From NCBI RefSeq assembly GCF_001194135.2, contig NC_068999.1:9416089-9480088 (forward strand): a stretch of DNA of 64,000 nucleotides, read 5' to 3'. The DNA comes from Octopus bimaculoides (lineage: Eukaryota). A program made the translations under genes and the position numbers. The notes under the pieces were generated by a model. The model was given only the letters and a program-made list of their open reading frames with translations. It had not been told where the DNA came from and made no database searches. This document shows positions 6,346 to 52,663 of this stretch, one piece after another (position 1 is the stretch's first letter; every line of letters begins with the position of its first letter).

Positions 6346-7331
6346 CATATACATATACATATACATACACGTATACAAACACATACACATATACATTAAT
6401 ATTCAGACACATACATATACTCGCACAAATACACACAAACGTAGATATATATCATATAAATATAAATGTGTAGATTTATGTATGCATGCACGTATGTATG
6501 TATGTATGTATGTATGTATGTATATATGTATGTATTATGTATAAGCAATTGATCAATCGCGACTGCCTGTTTCGAAGTTTCGTTTATAATGGAGTCTCAA
6601 CAAATTTCTGAAAAGCCAAAACTGGGAAAAACTTCAAGTAACGAATTACCTGATATAATGAATATAATGTTGGCTCTTGAGGCTTTTAAGAAGCGTATAT
6701 TTAGTATTTAGTGAGCTGTGATGCATAAATCTCTGAAGTTTTCGTGAATATATGTGAGCAAGACAGCGTAACCTCGTTGCCGGGTATTATAGTCACGGTC
6801 CTAAGGTCTTAGTTTCGATTGCTAGAGAAGGCAGAACCGTCCCTGCATCGTTGATACAGTGTAATTATTAGAAAATGACTACGATCATTGTCCTTGAGTT
6901 CTTCTCCCTGCAGTAGTTATGTAGTCTCTGAAGAGTAGGGCTAAGTTTATCAAAGCCAAGAGACACTCTATGCTCAAAGTAACAAACCAGAATAATAAAC
7001 TATATCACAGTTGTTATTCGCTCGCGAGTGACTTCTAACTATAGGCCTATGTGTTTCAATACACACACATACCTACACACACATGTACCCGCGCTCACAC
7101 ACACTTACACACACACACACACGTATATATACAGACGCGTAGACTCAGATACAAATATTCACATGCGCGAAACGCACACACACAGATCTATATATACACA
7201 TATCTGTACATATAAGCGAGTTTTAGAATATGGAGGCTCCTAAACAACACATTCTAATGTCTTTAGCTTACTGATACTCCAGCCTGACTGAAGCAGCATT
7301 ATATAAAATGAAATATTCGCAAACACATCAG

Positions 7332-7843: not shown

Positions 7844-8247
7844 ACACACACACATATATATGTATGTATTGTCATTTTTTATTTCACAACATGTGATATT
7901 CACTAACAGCTATTTTTTACACATTCCTAACAGTAAATTATTTTTAGCCCCTGTACGTCGTTCAGATTCTATACGTTTCCTCTTTACAAAATATAGTTTG
8001 TTCTGTTTGTATATACAAACGTATTGTCATACACGAATAAATCATTGTATTAATGTATAAATCTGTACACACACACACACACATTTATATATATATATAT
8101 ATGAATAAACATAATTGGCTGTAAACAGAATAATATGGTGAAATGGGATTTAAAATATCCTAACTTTATTATACAGACAACGGATATACAAATATATACA
8201 CATATATGTATACACACACACACACACACACACGCACACAAACACAC

Positions 8248-21032: not shown

Positions 21033-21070
21033 ATCAGTGTATATATATATATATGTATATATATACATAT

Positions 21071-21156
21071 ATACATCTGAGGAGAGCGGTTTTTAAATTG
21101 ATGTGATGTTTTCATTGATCGATAAAATGGAACTGCTCGAAACAGCCGTAATGTAT
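21071..21156 (+). ncRNA. Type I hammerhead ribozyme motif, family B (long helix II)
   Basis: Helix I ATACAT(21071-76)/ATGTAT(21151-56). Core CTGAGGA(21077-83). Helix II GAGCGGTTTT(21084-93)/GGAACTGCTC(21129-38). GAAA(21139-42), helix III AC..GT, cleavage triplet GTA(21148-50). All conserved core nucleotides are present. Confidence 0.85.
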
Positions 21157-21278
21157 TGACACCTGGATATCCTAGTTATTTATTTACATTCTGTTTGCCT
21201 AACTTAGAGGTGTGCGGACTATAACTTCTGGTTTGGTGCCTCAATTTAAGTACCTAATTCAACTGAATCAAAATTACA
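21071..21278 (+). mobile_element. HHR-bearing repeat family B (probable Penelope-like pLTR or retrozyme fragment)
   Basis: About 200 bp similar to 45721-45925 (minus) and 46030-46135 (plus), including downstream ACCTGGA.ATCCT.GTTA.TTATTTACATTCTGTT...AAGTACCTAATTCAACTGAATC. Class is inferred. Confidence 0.7.
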
Positions 21279-21476
21279 CCCCCCCCCATATATATATATA
21301 TANNNNNNNNNNNNNNNNNNNNNNNNNNNNNNNNNNNNNNNNNNNNNNNNNNNNNNNNNNNNNNNNNNNNNNNNNNNNNNNNNNNNNNNNNNNNNNNNNN
21401 NNNNNNNNNNNNNNNNNNNNNNNNNNNNNNNNNNNNNNNNNNNNNNNNNNNNNTGTGTGTGTGTGTGTGTGTGTAT

Positions 21477-26247: not shown

Positions 26248-26452
26248 ACTATAGGTACAATACCTGAAGTTTGGTGGGTGGGATAGTCGATTACATCGAC
26301 TCCAGTACTCAGCTGATACTTAATTTATCGACCCCGTAAAAATGAAAGGTAAAGTGGACCTGGTGGAATTTGAACTCAGAACGTAGCGACGGGCGAATTA
26401 CCGCCATCTATTTTGCCCGGCGTGCTAACGATTCTGCCATTTTGCCGCCTTA
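26248..26452 (-). mobile_element. SINE family 1, full length
   Basis: Reverse complement: TAAGGCGGCAAAATGGCAGAATCGTTAGC..TTCTGAGTTCAAATTCC..GGGGTCGATAAATTAAGTATCAG. Confidence 0.9.
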
Positions 26453-46029: not shown

Positions 46030-46135
46030 GTGTTTTCTCTCAAATTGATGCAATATTTTCATTGCTCGATTAGATGGAGCCGCTCGAAACGGCCGTAGTG
46101 TATTGATACCTGACATCCTAGTTACTTATTCAATG
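46030..46135 (+). mobile_element. HHR-bearing repeat family B, third copy, 5' truncated (3' half of HHR only)
   Basis: GGAGCCGCTC-GAAAC-GGCC-GTA-GTGTATTGATACCTGACATCCTAGTTACTTATT. No CTGAGGA upstream. Confidence 0.8.
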
Positions 46136-47735: not shown

Positions 47736-48449
47736 ATTATCATCATAGATAACCTACAACAAACTACAGTAAGTTTGATTCACAGGCCATCATTGAAAAA
47801 CGTTGAAAACATTTCCCAAATGCTATGCAACAATCTTCTTCAAGTCAAGCACTTACAAAGCTTAATTCAGTTCAATTGAAAAGTATGGGTAAGCAACGCA
47901 TTGTAAGCGGCACCATAATCTTCGAAAAAAAAAAAAAGTATCTGTGCGCAGGTTATCCCACCTGTCTCAAATGATAGGAGACACCTGTGATAAAGAGTCG
48001 ATGAATAGGCCACAGAATGTGTTAAGAAAAGGCTTTGAAAAATAACACCAACAGCAACAACAGCAATAATAATAATACGCAGTAGCAGGCAGGGGCTCTG
48101 AAGAGTTATCATGTACATTATTTTGTCTTGGCATAAAAGATGGGCTACAACAAATATTCTTCCCAATACAACAGGATTGCTTGTCCGTTGCTTGACCTTA
48201 ACCAATTGAGCATGTCTCTTAGTGGCTGATATGTGCATCTCTGATCACGAGCAGAAGTATTGGGGAGCATCATAGTCATGTGTTGATAGGAATTTTGGGT
48301 GGGGTTTGGATAATTCACCTTTGGAAACATGGGTGTTTTGTACATCATCATTAAACAACCCCTATTCAGGGACCTTTTGAGCAGGATGAGTTACTCTACC
48401 TGAAGAAAATGCTGAGGTCCACCTGCAATGCCATGCGCTGTTTATTTTT

Positions 48450-48507
48450 CAGCATGTGGCGTATGATTAAGAGCGCGGGTACTCACCCCCATGATTCCAG
48501 GCAATGA

Positions 48508-48580
<73 letters not shown>

Positions 48581-48715
48581 TCCCCAAGACACCTGGTGAA
48601 GGCTGGAGGATATATCAGCCGAAAGGTTGTGCTAACAACAAACAAGATGAGGATATATATCCGTCAAATGTAAGTAATGTAAATAATGTACATAATTCCT
48701 CATCTCTTAGATATA
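48450..48715 (+). mobile_element. Family A unit: deleted tRNA-like head, (AAT)n, mutated HHR and tail
   Basis: GCATGTGGCGTATGATTAAGAGCGCGGG..GATTCCAGGCAATGACCTG-(AAT)n-CCCAAGACAC-CTGGTGA-A-GGCTG-N10-CAGCC-GAAAG-GTT-GTGCTAACAACAAACAAGATGAGGA. Confidence 0.85.
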
Positions 48716-49861
48716 GAACAGTTTTGCTCAAAGTTCGGATGATTGAACGAGCGTACCAAGGGTTAAAACACAGAAAATCACCGCTGTAAAGCTACACTAA
48801 ATATAAAACAAATGTAAGATAATTATATATTTCATGAGTCCTTTCTCTTAATATCTAGAATAACAAACTAGAATCCTATCTATCCCTCGGACAAAATATT
48901 TTAGAGTGCCTCACATGGATGGAATCTTTTGTCTGAATTATAACCCATGGGATTGACTAAATCGGTTTTGGGGCACTGACGGTATCAACGCTCATGCTGA
49001 GAGAGATAAATTGTCCCAGGGAATTGATATGCAACAGTGTATTTTTGCGTTAACTACATCATTTATGAGCACGAGAGAGAAAGAGTCATCCACCAGTGAG
49101 GGGTTAATTTCCATACGTTCGCGACACCGTGGTAGAAGAAAGGTTTAATGGGCGATAGCTAAAAGCGGGGTAATGGTAGGAAATGAAAAGCAATCCACTT
49201 AAACGAAAATAAGCAAGGAAAAAAATCCTTAAAATGTTACAAATTCTACGTAGAGAACATTCTTACACGAACAAACAAACAAACATTACCACTTCTCTAC
49301 ATAACAATACCAAAATATTCTAGCAAGATACGTTTGCATAATGGCTAAAACCGAAGCAAATGAAATCGTTTCTTTTCATATTTTTCCTTCTTCATGTATG
49401 TCTTATTTCCGTTTTTTCTTTCCATTTTTATGTCTTTATTTAAACCTCTTCCTTATTTTTCTTTCTCTCATTTTGTTACTCCTTTATATCTCTTGTACAC
49501 GTTCGATTTCTTTTCTGCTTTCGTTTTTCGATTTTTTTTTTTTTAGTTTTGCTTCTGTTTCTGTGTGTAGTTCGTTGAATAACTGCAATAAAATAACCCT
49601 GTTAAATGAGCGATCTAATCAATGTGTTAGCGAGTGGCTTTTACAGAGATTCTGTTAAATGAATCCTTATACCACAGAAACAGGATTAAGACAGATTCTA
49701 GTTGACAGACGGATAAAAGGAAGATCTAAGCTAAAATTTCAATCCGAAGTAGCATCAAAGAATAAAAATTAAATAAGGTAAACAATTTACAAGTAAAATA
49801 AAGCAAAACAAACAAATGAGAACAAAAAACAAAAGAAAGGGAACACATGCACACACACACA

Positions 49862-49908
<47 letters not shown>

Positions 49909-50269
49909 ACACGTAGGTACACGTACAAGACATACATAAACTTGTAACTGTGAAAAACATGAAATATCTTATTTTGAAAACGAACTGTCAACGTTCGTAA
50001 TATGATGCATATGACAGTATAAATACGTGCATAGCTACATACATGCGTATATATATATATATATATATATACACTTGTATATATGCGGATATGTGTATTT
50101 TTCTGCATACACATTCGCAAATGCACGCACTAACACATAAACCCACGCCCCGCTCCCACACACCCGCACATCCACATTCACATATCGTTATGTGTACAGA
50201 GGGGAATATTTGCATTCATTGTATTTCGATTCACTATGTACGAGTGTGAGAGTAAGAGAGAGGGAGAGA

Positions 50270-50307
<38 letters not shown>

Positions 50308-50660
50308 CAGAGAGTGAGAGAGAGAGAGAGAGAGATTGTGTATGTGATTTTACGAGGACATAAGTCTATTATAACTGTTTTTTTACGTTTCTGTATCTTC
50401 GTTACCCTATTTATGTTCGTTGAATTCCAATTATTTTGGAACCAATAATATAATCAATGCTAATAAGTAAATAGCATTGTATTGATGATGGTTTTCGTAA
50501 TGATGACGTCGATAATGAACACGAGGATGCAGACGAGGATGAGGATTATGCTGATGATGAAGTAGGACAAATTGGGATTGCTTAAAATTATGTCCAATAT
50601 TGTGATGTTATAAAAACACATAGACATCACTCGTAGGCTGATATGTTTCAGTAGCATCTA

Positions 50661-50788
50661 CAGGGTGTCCACAAAAATCAGGCTACATGGAGTAAATAAA
50701 ATCGTAACGTAAACAATTAAATATAAGAAATAATTATTTCTTAAAGTGTGTGTTAATCACCATGTACCCAGACTTTGTGGACACACTG
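50661..50788. mobile_element. 128-bp MITE (Tc1/mariner-type)
   Basis: TIRs CAGGGTGTCCACAAAAATCAGGCTACATGG (50661-90) and CCATGTACCCAGACTTTGTGGACACACTG (50760-88), flanked by TA at 50659-60 and 50789-90. Confidence 0.88.
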
Positions 50789-51030
50789 TACAACGTTCTC
50801 CGTGATTGTTCAGAGAATACTTACAAGGTAATTTTTTAGACTATAACGTTCTCCCTGATTGTTTTAGGTGTCTCGGTAGTTTCCTCCAATGGGATATCGG
50901 TGATGCAGGGAAAGTTAGGGTTGATTAAAATTCTGCGCAAGATAATGATGACACAAAACCCATAGATAATATTTGTAAGCTAATGTTTTAGTCTATAACG
51001 TTCTCACCGATTGTTTTAGGTGCTCTGTAG

Positions 51031-51400
51031 TATCCACCAATAGAGGAGAATATGACCAAAGACTGCGTGTACTCCATCCCATGCATCTGTGGTAGGATAT
51101 ACAAAGGCGAAACATGTCGCCTCCTCAAAATAAGGTAGACGAACATCGCAAAGCTGTGACGCGAGGAGATATTGATAAATCGGTTATAGCTGATCATGTA
51201 TGGAAAGACTGAGACCACCTCTCCCTGTGGGATGAAGTTAAAGTAATAGACAGAGAACACCACTGGAAAATGAGAAAACTAAAACAGGCAACACATATGC
51301 TAATACACAACAACCTCTTAAGCAGACCGAGTGCAGATATGAGCAGCATATGGGAACTGGTATTAAGGAAGGACAGAAAGATATTAGATTTTTTAAGCGC
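51031..51400 (+). pseudogene. Penelope-like element GIY-YIG endonuclease domain, one frameshift and one stop
   Basis: PPIEENMTKDCVYSIPCICGRIYKGETCRLLKIR/VDEHRKAVTRGDIDKSVIADHVWKD*DHLSLWDEVKVIDREHHWKMRKLKQATHM..SRPS..W. The VY-x-I-x-C-x-C..Y-x-GET-x-R..R..EH..ADH pattern includes the Cys/His residues typical of PLE endonucleases. Confidence 0.92.
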
Positions 51401-51418
51401 TAAAATTCACTCCATAAT

Positions 51419-51635
51419 TGCCCACGGCAATTAGTGGTTAAGAGCGCGAGCTAAAAGTTCCAAGATTCTGAGTTCGATTCCAAGCAGTGACCTGAATGAT
51501 AATAGTAATATTAATAATATCGAAAAGTACCTTAGGAATGAGAACCCAGGTCCGAAATTTCCACAAGACACCTGAAGAAGGCTGGAGAGTATAACAGCCG
51601 AAACGTTGTATTAACAACAAACAAGAAGAGGACAA
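51419..51635 (+). mobile_element. Family A unit: tRNA-like head, AAT spacer, HHR (PLE pLTR or PLE-dependent SINE)
   Basis: A box TAGTGGTTAAG, B box GAGTTCGATTCC (51470-81), AAT-rich spacer, HHR, tail AACAACAAACAAGAAGAGGAC. Segments are shared with 48450-48715 and 33047-33130. Confidence 0.85.
51567..51612 (+). ncRNA. Minimal type I hammerhead ribozyme motif, family A
   Basis: GACAC-CTGAAGA(51572-78)-A-GGCTG-GAGAGTATAA-CAGCC-GAAA(51600-03)-CGTT-GTATT. Helix I has 4 of 5 pairs (the other copy has GTG, restoring the C-G pair). Palindromic ACGT helix III, triplet GTT. Confidence 0.8.
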
Positions 51636-52663
51636 ATAATATTACCATCCAGTGAAGCGAACATGGAATAAACAAACGGATGAACTTGTAGTCATAGAAG
51701 TTAAAAATACTAGTTCATGCGGTTAGCTGTCACCTGGAAAAGAAGGGAGGGCTTGTACGATGAAAATAAAAAAAAAGCGACCAGTACTACTCATATCTCC
51801 CACGAAACTCACATTAACTATATATATATNNNNNNNNNNNNNNNNNNNNNNNNNNNNNNNNNNNNNNNNNNNNNNNNNNNNNNNNNNNNNNNNNNNNNNN
51901 NNNNNNNNNNNNNNNNNNNNNNNNNNNNNNNNNNNNNNNNNNNNNNNNNNNNNNNNNNNNNNNNNNNNNNNNNNNNNNNNNNNNNNNNNNNNNNNNNNNN
52001 NNNNNNNNNNNNNNNNNNNNNNNNNNNNNNNNNNNNNNNNNNNNNNNNNNNNNNNNNNNNNNNNNNNNNNNNNNNNNNNNNNNNNNNNNNNNNNNNNNNN
52101 NNNNNNNNNNNNNNNNNNNNNNNNNNNNNNNNNNNNNNNNNNNNNNNNNNNNNNNNNNNNNNNNNNNNNNNNNNNNNNNNNNNNNNNNNNNNNNNNNNNN
52201 NNNNNNNNNNNNNNNNNNNNNNNNNNNNNNNNNNNNNNNNNNNNNNNNNNNNNNNNNNNNNNNNNNNNNNNNNNNNNNNNNNNNNNNNNNNNNNNNNNNN
52301 NNNNNNNNNNNNNNNNNNNNNNNNNNNNNNNNNNNNNNNNNNNNNNNNNNNNNNNNNNNNNNNNNNNNNNNNNNNNNNNNNNNNNNNNNNNNNNNNNNNN
52401 NNNNNNNNNNNNNNNNNNNNNNNNNNNNNNNNNNNNNNNNNNNNNNNNNNNNNNNNNNNNNNNNNNNNNNNNNNNNNNNNNNNNNNNNNNNNNNNNNNNN
52501 NNNNNNNNNNNNNNNNNNNNNNNNNNNNNNNNNNNNNNNNNNNNNNNNNNNNNNNNNNNNNNNNNNNNNNNNNNNNNNNNNNNNNNNNNNNNNNNNNNNN
52601 NNNNNNNNNNNNNNNNNNNNNNNNNNNNNNNNNNNNNNNNNNNNNNNNNNNNNNNNNNNNNNN

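Follow-up and report, generated by a model that had tools for sequence, protein, structure and literature searches.

Does a Penelope-like element (PLE) of Octopus bimaculoides carry an RNA polymerase III (Pol III) promoter within its own pseudo-long terminal repeat (pLTR), or does an independent short interspersed nuclear element (SINE) bearing a ribozyme exploit the PLE machinery? The question is raised by positions 51031-51635 of a 64,000-nucleotide stretch of contig NC_068999.1 (assembly GCF_001194135.2, positions 9,416,089 to 9,480,088 of the forward strand), hereafter the window, where a reading made from the letters alone (the sequence-only reading) had noticed an endonuclease remnant, a tRNA-like head and a minimal hammerhead ribozyme (min-HHR), and had proposed both solutions. 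Our analysis favors, with a probability of about 0.7, that a 5′-truncated PLE with a modular pLTR ends, on its 3′ side, in this interval, and that units without an open reading frame (ORF) are pLTR retrocopies made by the PLE machinery. The features of this copy, window copy A, are the following.

50994-51380, + strand: C-terminal GIY-YIG endonuclease domain of a 5′-truncated PLE (homology, structure model of a homologue)
51381-51419, + strand: conserved non-coding post-stop box of 39 nt (conservation in relatives)
51420-51497, + strand: tRNA-derived head (comparison of copies, A/B box pattern)
51498-51520, + strand: AAT-type microsatellite spacer (sequence reading)
51521-51566, + strand: conserved pre-ribozyme block (conservation in both organisms compared)
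51567-51612, + strand: PLE-type minimal type I hammerhead (descriptor search, alignment, covariance model, PMC4209133)
51613-51638, + strand: post-ribozyme conserved block, 5′ arm of a stem-loop (conservation)

The tRNA-like module and the ribozyme are linked to the PLE ORF

Copies were located by blastn and nhmmer, a repeat listing of the whole window having been swamped by microsatellites and N runs. The comparison loci were L001 from O. vulgaris, L002 from O. sinensis (two copies), L003, and L004-L007, L026 and L027 from ENA assembly ERZ21867824, to which a PLE of the beetle Leptinotarsa (L028) and a locus of a third organism (L029) were added. The Octopus sample amounted to about 90 kb of DNA with five ORF-less copies. 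The ERZ21867824 loci have no other repeats in common with the window and therefore come from another, non-Octopus taxon, referred to below as the second organism.

The junction between ORF and head was identical in window copy A, L001, both copies of L002 and L003, and was followed in each by the spacer and the ribozyme tail, the order ORF, tRNA-like module, min-HHR being kept in 5/5 ORF-bearing Octopus copies (about 80-87% mutual identity, at least two species). The same order was observed in six of the seven ORF-linked copies of the second organism, whose PLE proteins are 50-64% identical; the tail of L006 was displaced. There, the stop codon is followed by a box (G)AACATTAGGTTTATAAG..AAAATT, the tRNA-like module, a spacer and a GAGTTCGA box, then by the ribozyme part CTGAAGAaGGCC..GGCCGAAA(C/T)GTT and a conserved AAGATGAGGACAA..TCYGAAAA block. 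In L027 the module is flanked by a perfect 7-bp acceptor-like stem (CCTGCAG/CTGCAGG). A profile derived from the ERZ21867824 copies matched the Octopus head region and the tail, separately. Linkage of head and ribozyme, on which the sequence-only reading had made its case depend, was upheld at the sampled loci, since all six min-HHR matches in Octopus DNA had head sequence or a head remnant upstream. Its proposal of a Pol III-type promoter module within a PLE pLTR is likewise supported by this architecture, the same junction recurring in all ORF-bearing Octopus copies and in a divergent lineage.

The distant PLEs L029 and L028 carried the same ribozyme 75-150 nt past the stop codon without a tRNA-like module, which suggests that the module was acquired by the ancestral pLTR of this lineage and inherited from then on. 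Judged by these comparisons, the tRNA-like module forms a conserved, integral part of the PLE pLTR, acquired specifically in this lineage. Of the complex insertions known from PLEs, which combine partial tandems (pLTRs) with an inverted 5′-truncated copy on the 5′ side, the inverted 5′-truncated partners were present in L002 (between 3175 and 3192), L026 (5409-6758/7001-8350) and L029.

The endonuclease remnant belongs to a 5′-truncated PLE

The frame open at the interval (CVYSIPCICGRIYKGETCR...DEHRKAV in a reading of 50800-51900) is of the PLE endonuclease type, and a protein search with the frame-corrected peptide returned O. vulgaris and O. sinensis proteins as nearest homologues, together with contigs of ENA assemblies. 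Homologous ORFs terminate in ...IWEPxxKKxR, which sets the end of the window ORF at about 51380. The GIY-YIG ORF described in the sequence-only reading was thus recovered at 50994-51380, but it is less decayed than stated there (one frameshift near 51133, one in-frame TGA at 51210-51212), and it does not abut the head directly, as the 39-nt non-coding box lies in between.

Longer relatives possess an RVT_1-positive ORF upstream of the same endonuclease domain, and a YVDD motif was found upstream of it in L002. When RT-bearing (reverse transcriptase-bearing) PLE proteins were searched against the whole window by tblastn, no RT-like sequence was detected upstream of 50994-51380, and the matches of all long relatives were confined to 50994-51374; the element is therefore 5′-truncated. 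By homology, the interval can be assigned to the canonical endonuclease-positive (EN+) PLEs, in which the RT is followed by a C-terminal GIY-YIG domain, the RT part being seen in relatives only. Pfam did not call GIY-YIG in the endonuclease and a PDB sequence search did not recognize it. For an intact homologue, AlphaFold with an alignment of 37 sequences gave a model with a predicted local distance difference test score (pLDDT) of 86.6, whose four best PDB matches included I-TevI, Hpy188I and T4 EndoII, with weak E-values (probability 0.96, E 0.17). An earlier model, made from the decayed sequence and a shallow alignment, was discarded (pLDDT 47). A protein search with the open frame through the tail yielded a single O. 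bimaculoides entry. Just upstream of the remnant, and entering it, there is a local duplication of 84% identity (50812-50890 / 50964-51041).

The ribozyme is a PLE-type minimal hammerhead

The pre-ribozyme block holds the second B-box-like stretch that had been reported to follow the AAT spacer; both are indeed present, the spacer at 51498-51520 and the stretch, GGTCCGAAATT, at 51549-51559, where relatives of both organisms carry GGTTCGAAATT. The ribozyme stretch behind the block reads gacacCTGAAGAaGGCTGgagagtataaCAGCCGAAACGTTgtatt. Helix I (51567-71 / 51608-12) encloses the core box CUGAAGA (CTGAAGA, 51572-51578), an unpaired A (51579), helix II GGCTG/CAGCC (51580-84 / 51595-99) and GAAACGTT (51600-07), which comprises GAAAC (51600-04) and GUU (51605-07). 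The type I minimal hammerhead with intact core proposed from the letters was recovered, and the cut proposed after T51607 agrees with the one predicted by standard numbering.

A simple min-HHR descriptor gave 9 matches in 180 kb, compared with about 0.2 in shuffled sequence. Twelve copies from the two organisms were aligned, and 77% of the cells of the hammerhead pairing were paired (86% in helix II), as against 14-51% when the partners were slid. The pair 10.4-11.4 showed compensatory changes (UA in six copies, CG in five, UG in one), and the covariation score of 0.216, as against 0.124 in shuffles, was reached by none of 500 of them; the covariation that had been asked of the helices is accordingly present in helix II. 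The core boxes CUGANGA, GAAA and UH were intact in 8/12 copies, an A stood between A9 and G10.1 in every copy, and the G10.1-C11.1 pair was found in ten. Helix I measures 3-5 bp and showed no covariation. There is no helix III loop: the junction reads ACGU in Octopus, L004, L026 and L029, and AUGU, capable of pairing with itself through wobbles, in L005, L006 and L027. A covariance model trained on the 12 copies recovered untrained min-HHRs directly after the PLE ORFs of L029 (40 bits) and of the beetle locus L028 (23.7 bits).

PLE min-HHRs, as described in PMC4209133, lie in the pLTR, have a short helix I and combine the catalytic boxes with a G10.1-C11.1 pair and a conserved extra nucleotide that separates A9 from G10.1; they lack a helix III loop, have a palindromic junction, are active as dimers and cleave poorly in vitro. 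By its features, the window motif is a genuine PLE min-HHR of this already known kind, for which cleavage is predicted. The extra nucleotide, which the sequence-only reading had likened to an oddity tolerated in a viroid, is instead a defining trait of the PLE motif according to that paper. The search of the Rfam hammerhead models that had been suggested found nothing: neither a hammerhead nor a tRNA was returned at 51031-51635, at the gathering threshold or at E<=10, and Hammerhead_1 (RF00163) gave no match at E<=10 on 51380-51700, a miss that is expected because the model needs a helix III hairpin. A pattern of helix II followed by GAAACGTT hit 18 loci in JGI metagenome contigs, none with CTGANGA upstream, and these were taken as chance bacterial matches.

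The head resembles a tRNA in its promoter boxes

In relatives the post-stop box reads ATATTAGATTTATAAGCTCTAAAATTCACTCCATAATT and includes a TATA-like TATAAG that precedes the head start by 28 nt; it is altered to TTTTTTAAG in window copy A (51387-51397). Past the ORF stop and ahead of the tRNA-like module, L001-L007, L027 and the window (51381-51419) have a box of about 30 nt with the TATA-like TTTATAAG. Among the ORF-linked copies of both organisms, only L026 departs from it, reading TTTAATAG, and there the A box has decayed as well. The distance from the TATA-like box to the A box is 41-43 nt in both organisms.

In window copy A, the head runs GCCCACGG..TAGTGGTTAAGAGCG..GAGTTCGATTCC..CAGTGACCTGAAT. 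Its start, 13 nt upstream of the A box, is near-palindromic (ATGCCCACGGGCAT; GCCCACGG in this copy), and CAGTGACCTGAAT occupies its end (51485-51497). Of the two boxes claimed for this head, the B box stands (GAGTTCGATTCC, 51470-51481), whereas the A box is a remnant at about 51428-51440, damaged by a 6-7-nt deletion relative to relatives. The best-preserved copies have the A box TGGCGTAGTGG, spaced from the B box exactly as in a tRNA; such spacing is seen in window C (see below), in L002b and in L003. A regular expression for the two boxes matched six times in 180 kb, compared with 0.02 times in shuffles, and three of the six matches fell in heads of this family. The A-box region is kept across the two organisms, whereas the adjoining spacer is not.

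No tRNA was called at any head by ARAGORN at default settings (window and every locus) or by the Rfam tRNA model; the head is therefore tRNA-like solely at the level of its promoter boxes. ARAGORN calls at relaxed thresholds were mutually inconsistent and were not used, and a sigma-70 promoter scan was set aside as irrelevant for a eukaryote. The Octopus consensus has no T4 run between the head and the end of the tail.

Copies end in or after a conserved stem-loop

The ribozyme is followed by a stem-loop AGAUGAGGA...UCCUCAUCU, found at window 48645-48705, at L002 6950-7015, in the minus-strand copy of L026 and at L027 8870-8940. It is kept in both organisms, with a compensatory change in L027 (GAUGAAG/CUUCAUC). 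In all 14 copies examined, the sequence continues beyond the predicted cut site for 31 nt or more, entering the conserved block, so that processing of the unit's 3′ end by the ribozyme is not supported. The 3′ ends fell into two classes. Short ends lie within the loop of the stem-loop, in window copy A (51638, after AAGAAGAGGACAAATA at 51623-51638), in L001a and in the plus-strand copy of L026, and long ends follow ...AAATATAGAAC, in window copy B (48721), L001 minus, L002a, L002 minus and L026 minus. Alternative 3′ ends tens of nucleotides apart are the PLE hallmark known as the tail, and the two classes agree with its description (PMC8557442). ORF-less and ORF-linked copies have their 3′ ends in common.

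The 3′ ends also agree with results on a vertebrate PLE, in which the RT initiates internally, in a stem-loop downstream of its hammerhead ribozyme (HHR), while its endonuclease favors 5′-ATT-3′ (PMC11167929). The post-ribozyme stem-loop is a candidate RT entry site, and the (AAT)n spacer would plausibly be a preferred endonuclease target, which could account for the truncated and inverted arrangements around it.

ORF-less copies and their 5′ ends

The 5′ ends were placed on a profile running from the ORF end through the tail, in which the head start is model position 383. The five ORF-less Octopus copies are listed below.

Window copy B, 48452-48721, + strand: starts at model 392; degraded head, (AAT)23, tail
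Window copy C, 33130-33020, - strand: starts at model 383; head and (AAT)n, no tail
L001 plus, 8068-8148, + strand: starts at model 383; head and (AAT)n, no tail
L001 minus, 7997-7796, - strand: starts at about 383; 17 nt of head start, (AAT)n, intact tail
L002 minus, 3175-2880, - strand: starts at model 435; adjoins an inverted ORF-linked copy

The sequence-only reading had seen the same unit at 48450-48715. A copy free of ORF is there (copy B), but its head is without the first 9 nt and has lost half of the B box, on the 5′ side, and its hammerhead core is mutated (CTGGTGA at 48593-99, GAAAG at 48621-25). Its spacer is lengthened to (AAT)23 (48512-48580), its stem-loop is AGATGAGGA/TCCTCATCT, and it has a long-type 3′ end, ...GATATAGAACAG. 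Copies B and A were considered as the two pLTRs of one element, their HHRs being 2980 nt apart, and this was rejected because no RT-like sequence lies between them. The second head copy, noted at 33047-33130 without endonuclease, was verified as copy C, a minus-strand head (33129-33048) with A and B boxes intact at tRNA spacing, followed by (AAT)n and no tail; its 5′ end adjoins an inverted arm at the palindromic head start.

Four of the five ORF-less Octopus copies have their 5′ end within 9 nt of the head start, a small number that includes two inverted junctions at the palindrome. The preferred end lies 28 nt downstream of TATAAG, which suggests a transcript start. Two of the five copies show head-to-head inverted junctions exactly at the near-palindrome, and these may result from cDNA snap-back at a discrete RNA end. 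The pattern of 5′ ends fits a Pol III SINE and reverse-transcribed PLE transcripts started in the pLTR equally well.

In the second organism, ORF-less copies begin at variable points within the tail, not at the head, and some copies have TTTT after the tRNA-like module, ahead of the HHR. Furthermore, copy B (48490-48505) and the ORF-linked L002a (6850-6865) have lost the same 12 nt, which lie between two ATTCC repeats and include the B box's 5′ half. These three observations argue against a strict dependence on Pol III. In every ORF-linked copy the autonomous element contains the entire unit with its head, so that the independent existence expected of a SINE, which would have just the 3′ tail in common with its partner, was not seen; for the ORF-less copies, SINE status is plausible. 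A search of 48000-51830 found no tandem array of the kind formed by retrozyme monomers.

A probable modular pLTR and the competing explanations

In the explanation we prefer, all sequence past the ORF would be the 3′ untranslated region or pLTR of the PLE itself, with its modules in the order TATA-like box, tRNA-derived A/B-box module, microsatellite-prone spacer, min-HHR and stem-loop. The tRNA-like module would have been gained once by an ancestral pLTR and passed on with the ORF ever since, and helix III of the min-HHR would be formable only as a dimer. PLE transcripts starting in the pLTR, perhaps at the head start, would be reverse-transcribed from the copy of the RT entry site near their 5′ end. 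Reverse transcription would begin in or after the post-HHR stem-loop, giving two classes of 3′ end and copies that end in or after that structure, and would then proceed back to the preferred RNA 5′ end at the head start. Several points weigh against this explanation. The sample, about 90 kb of Octopus DNA with five ORF-less copies, is small, and two of the sharp 5′ ends coincide with inverted junctions at one palindrome, which could be an effect of structure and not mark where an RNA ended. The recovered loci included no full-length element preceded by a pLTR, and the PLE transcription start is to that extent deduced. Window 33129-33020 and L001 8068-8148 bear the head without the tail, which the explanation accommodates only through secondary (AAT)n events. 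Finally, A box, B box and TATA-like box are conserved in two organisms, and Pol III, in a true SINE or master gene, may matter more than we assume.

The last point leads to the most serious competitor, a true ribozyme-bearing SINE, in which the head would be a working type-2 Pol III promoter, helped by the TATA-like box in PLE-linked masters, and short head-to-tail RNAs, independent of the PLE mRNA, would be moved by the PLE RT and endonuclease through the shared 3′ stem-loop. In tRNA genes, Pol III is expected to start at a distance upstream of the A box like that of the head start, and the 13 nt seen here suit it, as do the exact tRNA spacing of the boxes in the best copies, an A-box region conserved in two organisms while the neighboring spacer is not, and the TATA-like box 41-43 nt before the A box in both. 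The four ORF-less copies that begin at the head start, the Octopus consensus without a T4 run from head to tail end, and the 3′ ends common to ORF-less and ORF-linked copies point the same way. Copy B and the ORF-linked L002a, however, both lack the B-box 5′ half that a type-2 promoter needs, even if recurrent slippage between the ATTCC repeats could alternatively have produced the shared deletion, and the variable starts inside the tail and the TTTT before the HHR in the second organism also disagree with such a SINE, which we regard as possible but less likely than not. Chance nesting of an unrelated tRNA-derived SINE in the tail of one PLE copy could invoke the tail-less heads with (AAT)n at window 33129-33020 and L001 8068-8148, and the (AAT)n tracts that are frequent in the window and adjoin other SINEs. 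The same junction and module order in five ORF-linked Octopus copies and in the divergent lineage nevertheless exclude it for practical purposes, and no independent SINE family with the same head was found elsewhere in the window; its probability is negligible.

Two further explanations concern the function of single modules. Cleavage of the RNase P/Z type at the tRNA-like module might separate the ORF mRNA from a pLTR RNA and so produce a sharp 5′ end without any promoter role. The perfect acceptor-like stem of L027 and the 5′ ends exactly at the module start would suit such a signal, whereas the Octopus heads have no acceptor stem, every tRNA detector rejects them, and the conserved TATA-like box upstream would be left unexplained, so that we rate it very improbable. 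The hammerhead-like motif, in turn, might in this lineage be an inactive relic or a structure bound by a protein or the RT. Its helix III could form only between two molecules, helix I is short (3-5 bp) without covariation, and the sequence 3′ of the cut site is retained in all copies; published min-HHRs cleave weakly in vitro (PMC4209133), and for the vertebrate PLE, cleavage was dispensable in vitro, HHR mutants having no effect on insertion (PMC11167929). An inactive motif is nonetheless unlikely, given that core boxes and helix II, with compensatory changes, have been kept between Octopus and a beetle PLE.

Other repeats in the window

Another repeat family, with units of about 245 nt and copies 79% identical to each other, occurs at 21057-21302 (+) and 45943-45703 (-), with an inverted partial arm at 46042-46130 (+). 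It opens with a hammerhead-like core, CTGAGGA-GAGCGGTTTY...GGAACYGCTC-GAAAC-ARCC-GTA, and ends in (TA)n; helix II has 10 bp, with wobble or compensatory differences between copies and no bulge, and helix III has 2 bp. This family may be another ribozyme-bearing retroelement tail. Heads of other tRNA-derived SINE families lie at 26340-26452 (-) and 31270-31322 (-), the former adjoining a 105-nt (AAT)n tract. Such tracts are very frequent in the window, often at repeat boundaries. A repeated segment, CCATTTCTTGCCGAGTGTCTTCRTGACAGCTAG, is present at 33150-33200 and 33535-33580, with (AAT)n after the second copy.

Implications

PLEs are the least understood class of retrotransposons, with questions about transcript starts, the role of the hammerhead and the origin of non-autonomous partners. 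With its three conserved landmarks in a row (TATA-like and tRNA-type boxes, min-HHR, stem-loop), this lineage offers a map of a PLE control region that is compact and can be tested. A bolder proposal, less likely than not, is that a cephalopod PLE lineage has in its pLTR a complete Pol III unit (upstream TATA-like box with tRNA-type A and B boxes) and that each PLE copy is a master gene for a short, ribozyme-bearing, retrotransposed RNA. This would be the first SINE family partnered with a Penelope-like element, born from its autonomous partner and physically carried by it.

Surveys of octopus repeats list many unclassified SINEs and PLEs without connecting them, the "unclassified SINE" fraction being very large (PMC13282606). 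If the head drives Pol III, the partnership between SINEs and autonomous elements would extend to a third class of retroelements and would help to explain part of that fraction (PMC13282606); if it does not, head-to-tail units should be annotated as PLE pLTR fragments and not as SINEs. A search of the full-text literature, with Repbase and Dfam outside its reach, found neither a PLE-SINE partnership nor a tRNA-like module in a pLTR; the module is apparently undescribed in this position, while the association of PLE and HHR is already known.

Comparison with known systems

The Sm-alpha element of Schistosoma, reportedly described by Ferbeyre et al. in 1998, is said to be a short free-standing repeat with tRNA-type Pol III boxes and a canonical type I hammerhead. 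The likeness lies in the pairing of tRNA-type boxes with a type I hammerhead, and in a host genome where PLEs with HHRs also occur; the difference is that in the present case tRNA-like module and min-HHR belong physically to the autonomous PLE. A unit of the second organism, at L004 2050-2215 with another copy at L007 14003-13880 (-), resembles Sm-alpha more closely than the window unit does. It joins a tRNA-like GTGGCCGAGATG...GTTTCGATCCCGG to a canonical type I hammerhead and (TA)n, and its hammerhead reached 26.5 bits with Rfam RF00163, short of the gathering score of 34 (E 4e-4 in 801 nt).

The min-HHRs of PLEs, as presented by Cervera & de la Pena 2014 (PMC4209133), share with the window motif the type I core, the ACGU palindrome, the extra nucleotide, G10.1-C11.1 and a short helix I. 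They also share the pLTR position just 3′ of the RT-GIY-YIG ORF, and many solitary copies from truncated elements. Helix II has 5-6 bp here and 7-8 bp in the schistosome families of that paper, no cephalopod is among the examples consulted there, and here the motif is preceded by a tRNA-derived module.

Non-LTR retrozymes, which have been proposed to be non-autonomous derivatives of PLEs (PMC7229834; bioRxiv 10.64898/2026.07.22.740005), resemble the present units in being ORF-less, HHR-bearing, related to PLE pLTRs and presumably dependent on PLE enzymes. They form tandem arrays of 170-400-nt monomers with canonical HHRs and circular RNAs, whereas the units described here are dispersed single copies with a min-HHR and a tRNA-like head. 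In neither paper is tRNA or Pol III mentioned. The non-autonomous derivatives of Chlamys PLEs, e.g., MRC1 (PMC8557442), are likewise ORF-less, with pLTR-like structures and 3′ ends in common with autonomous PLEs, but belong to a green-alga PLE lineage that lacks canonical HHRs and a tRNA-like head. A Pol III promoter that stems from the gene of a small RNA and sits inside the terminal repeat of a retroelement is known from the TRIMp3 elements Cassandra, Helenus and Ajax, where it is thought to derive from insertion of a SINE into the repeat (PMC10886601). Those are non-autonomous LTR retrotransposons, whereas here the host of the module is the pseudo-LTR of an autonomous PLE, which belongs to another class of retroelements, and the module stands beside a ribozyme.

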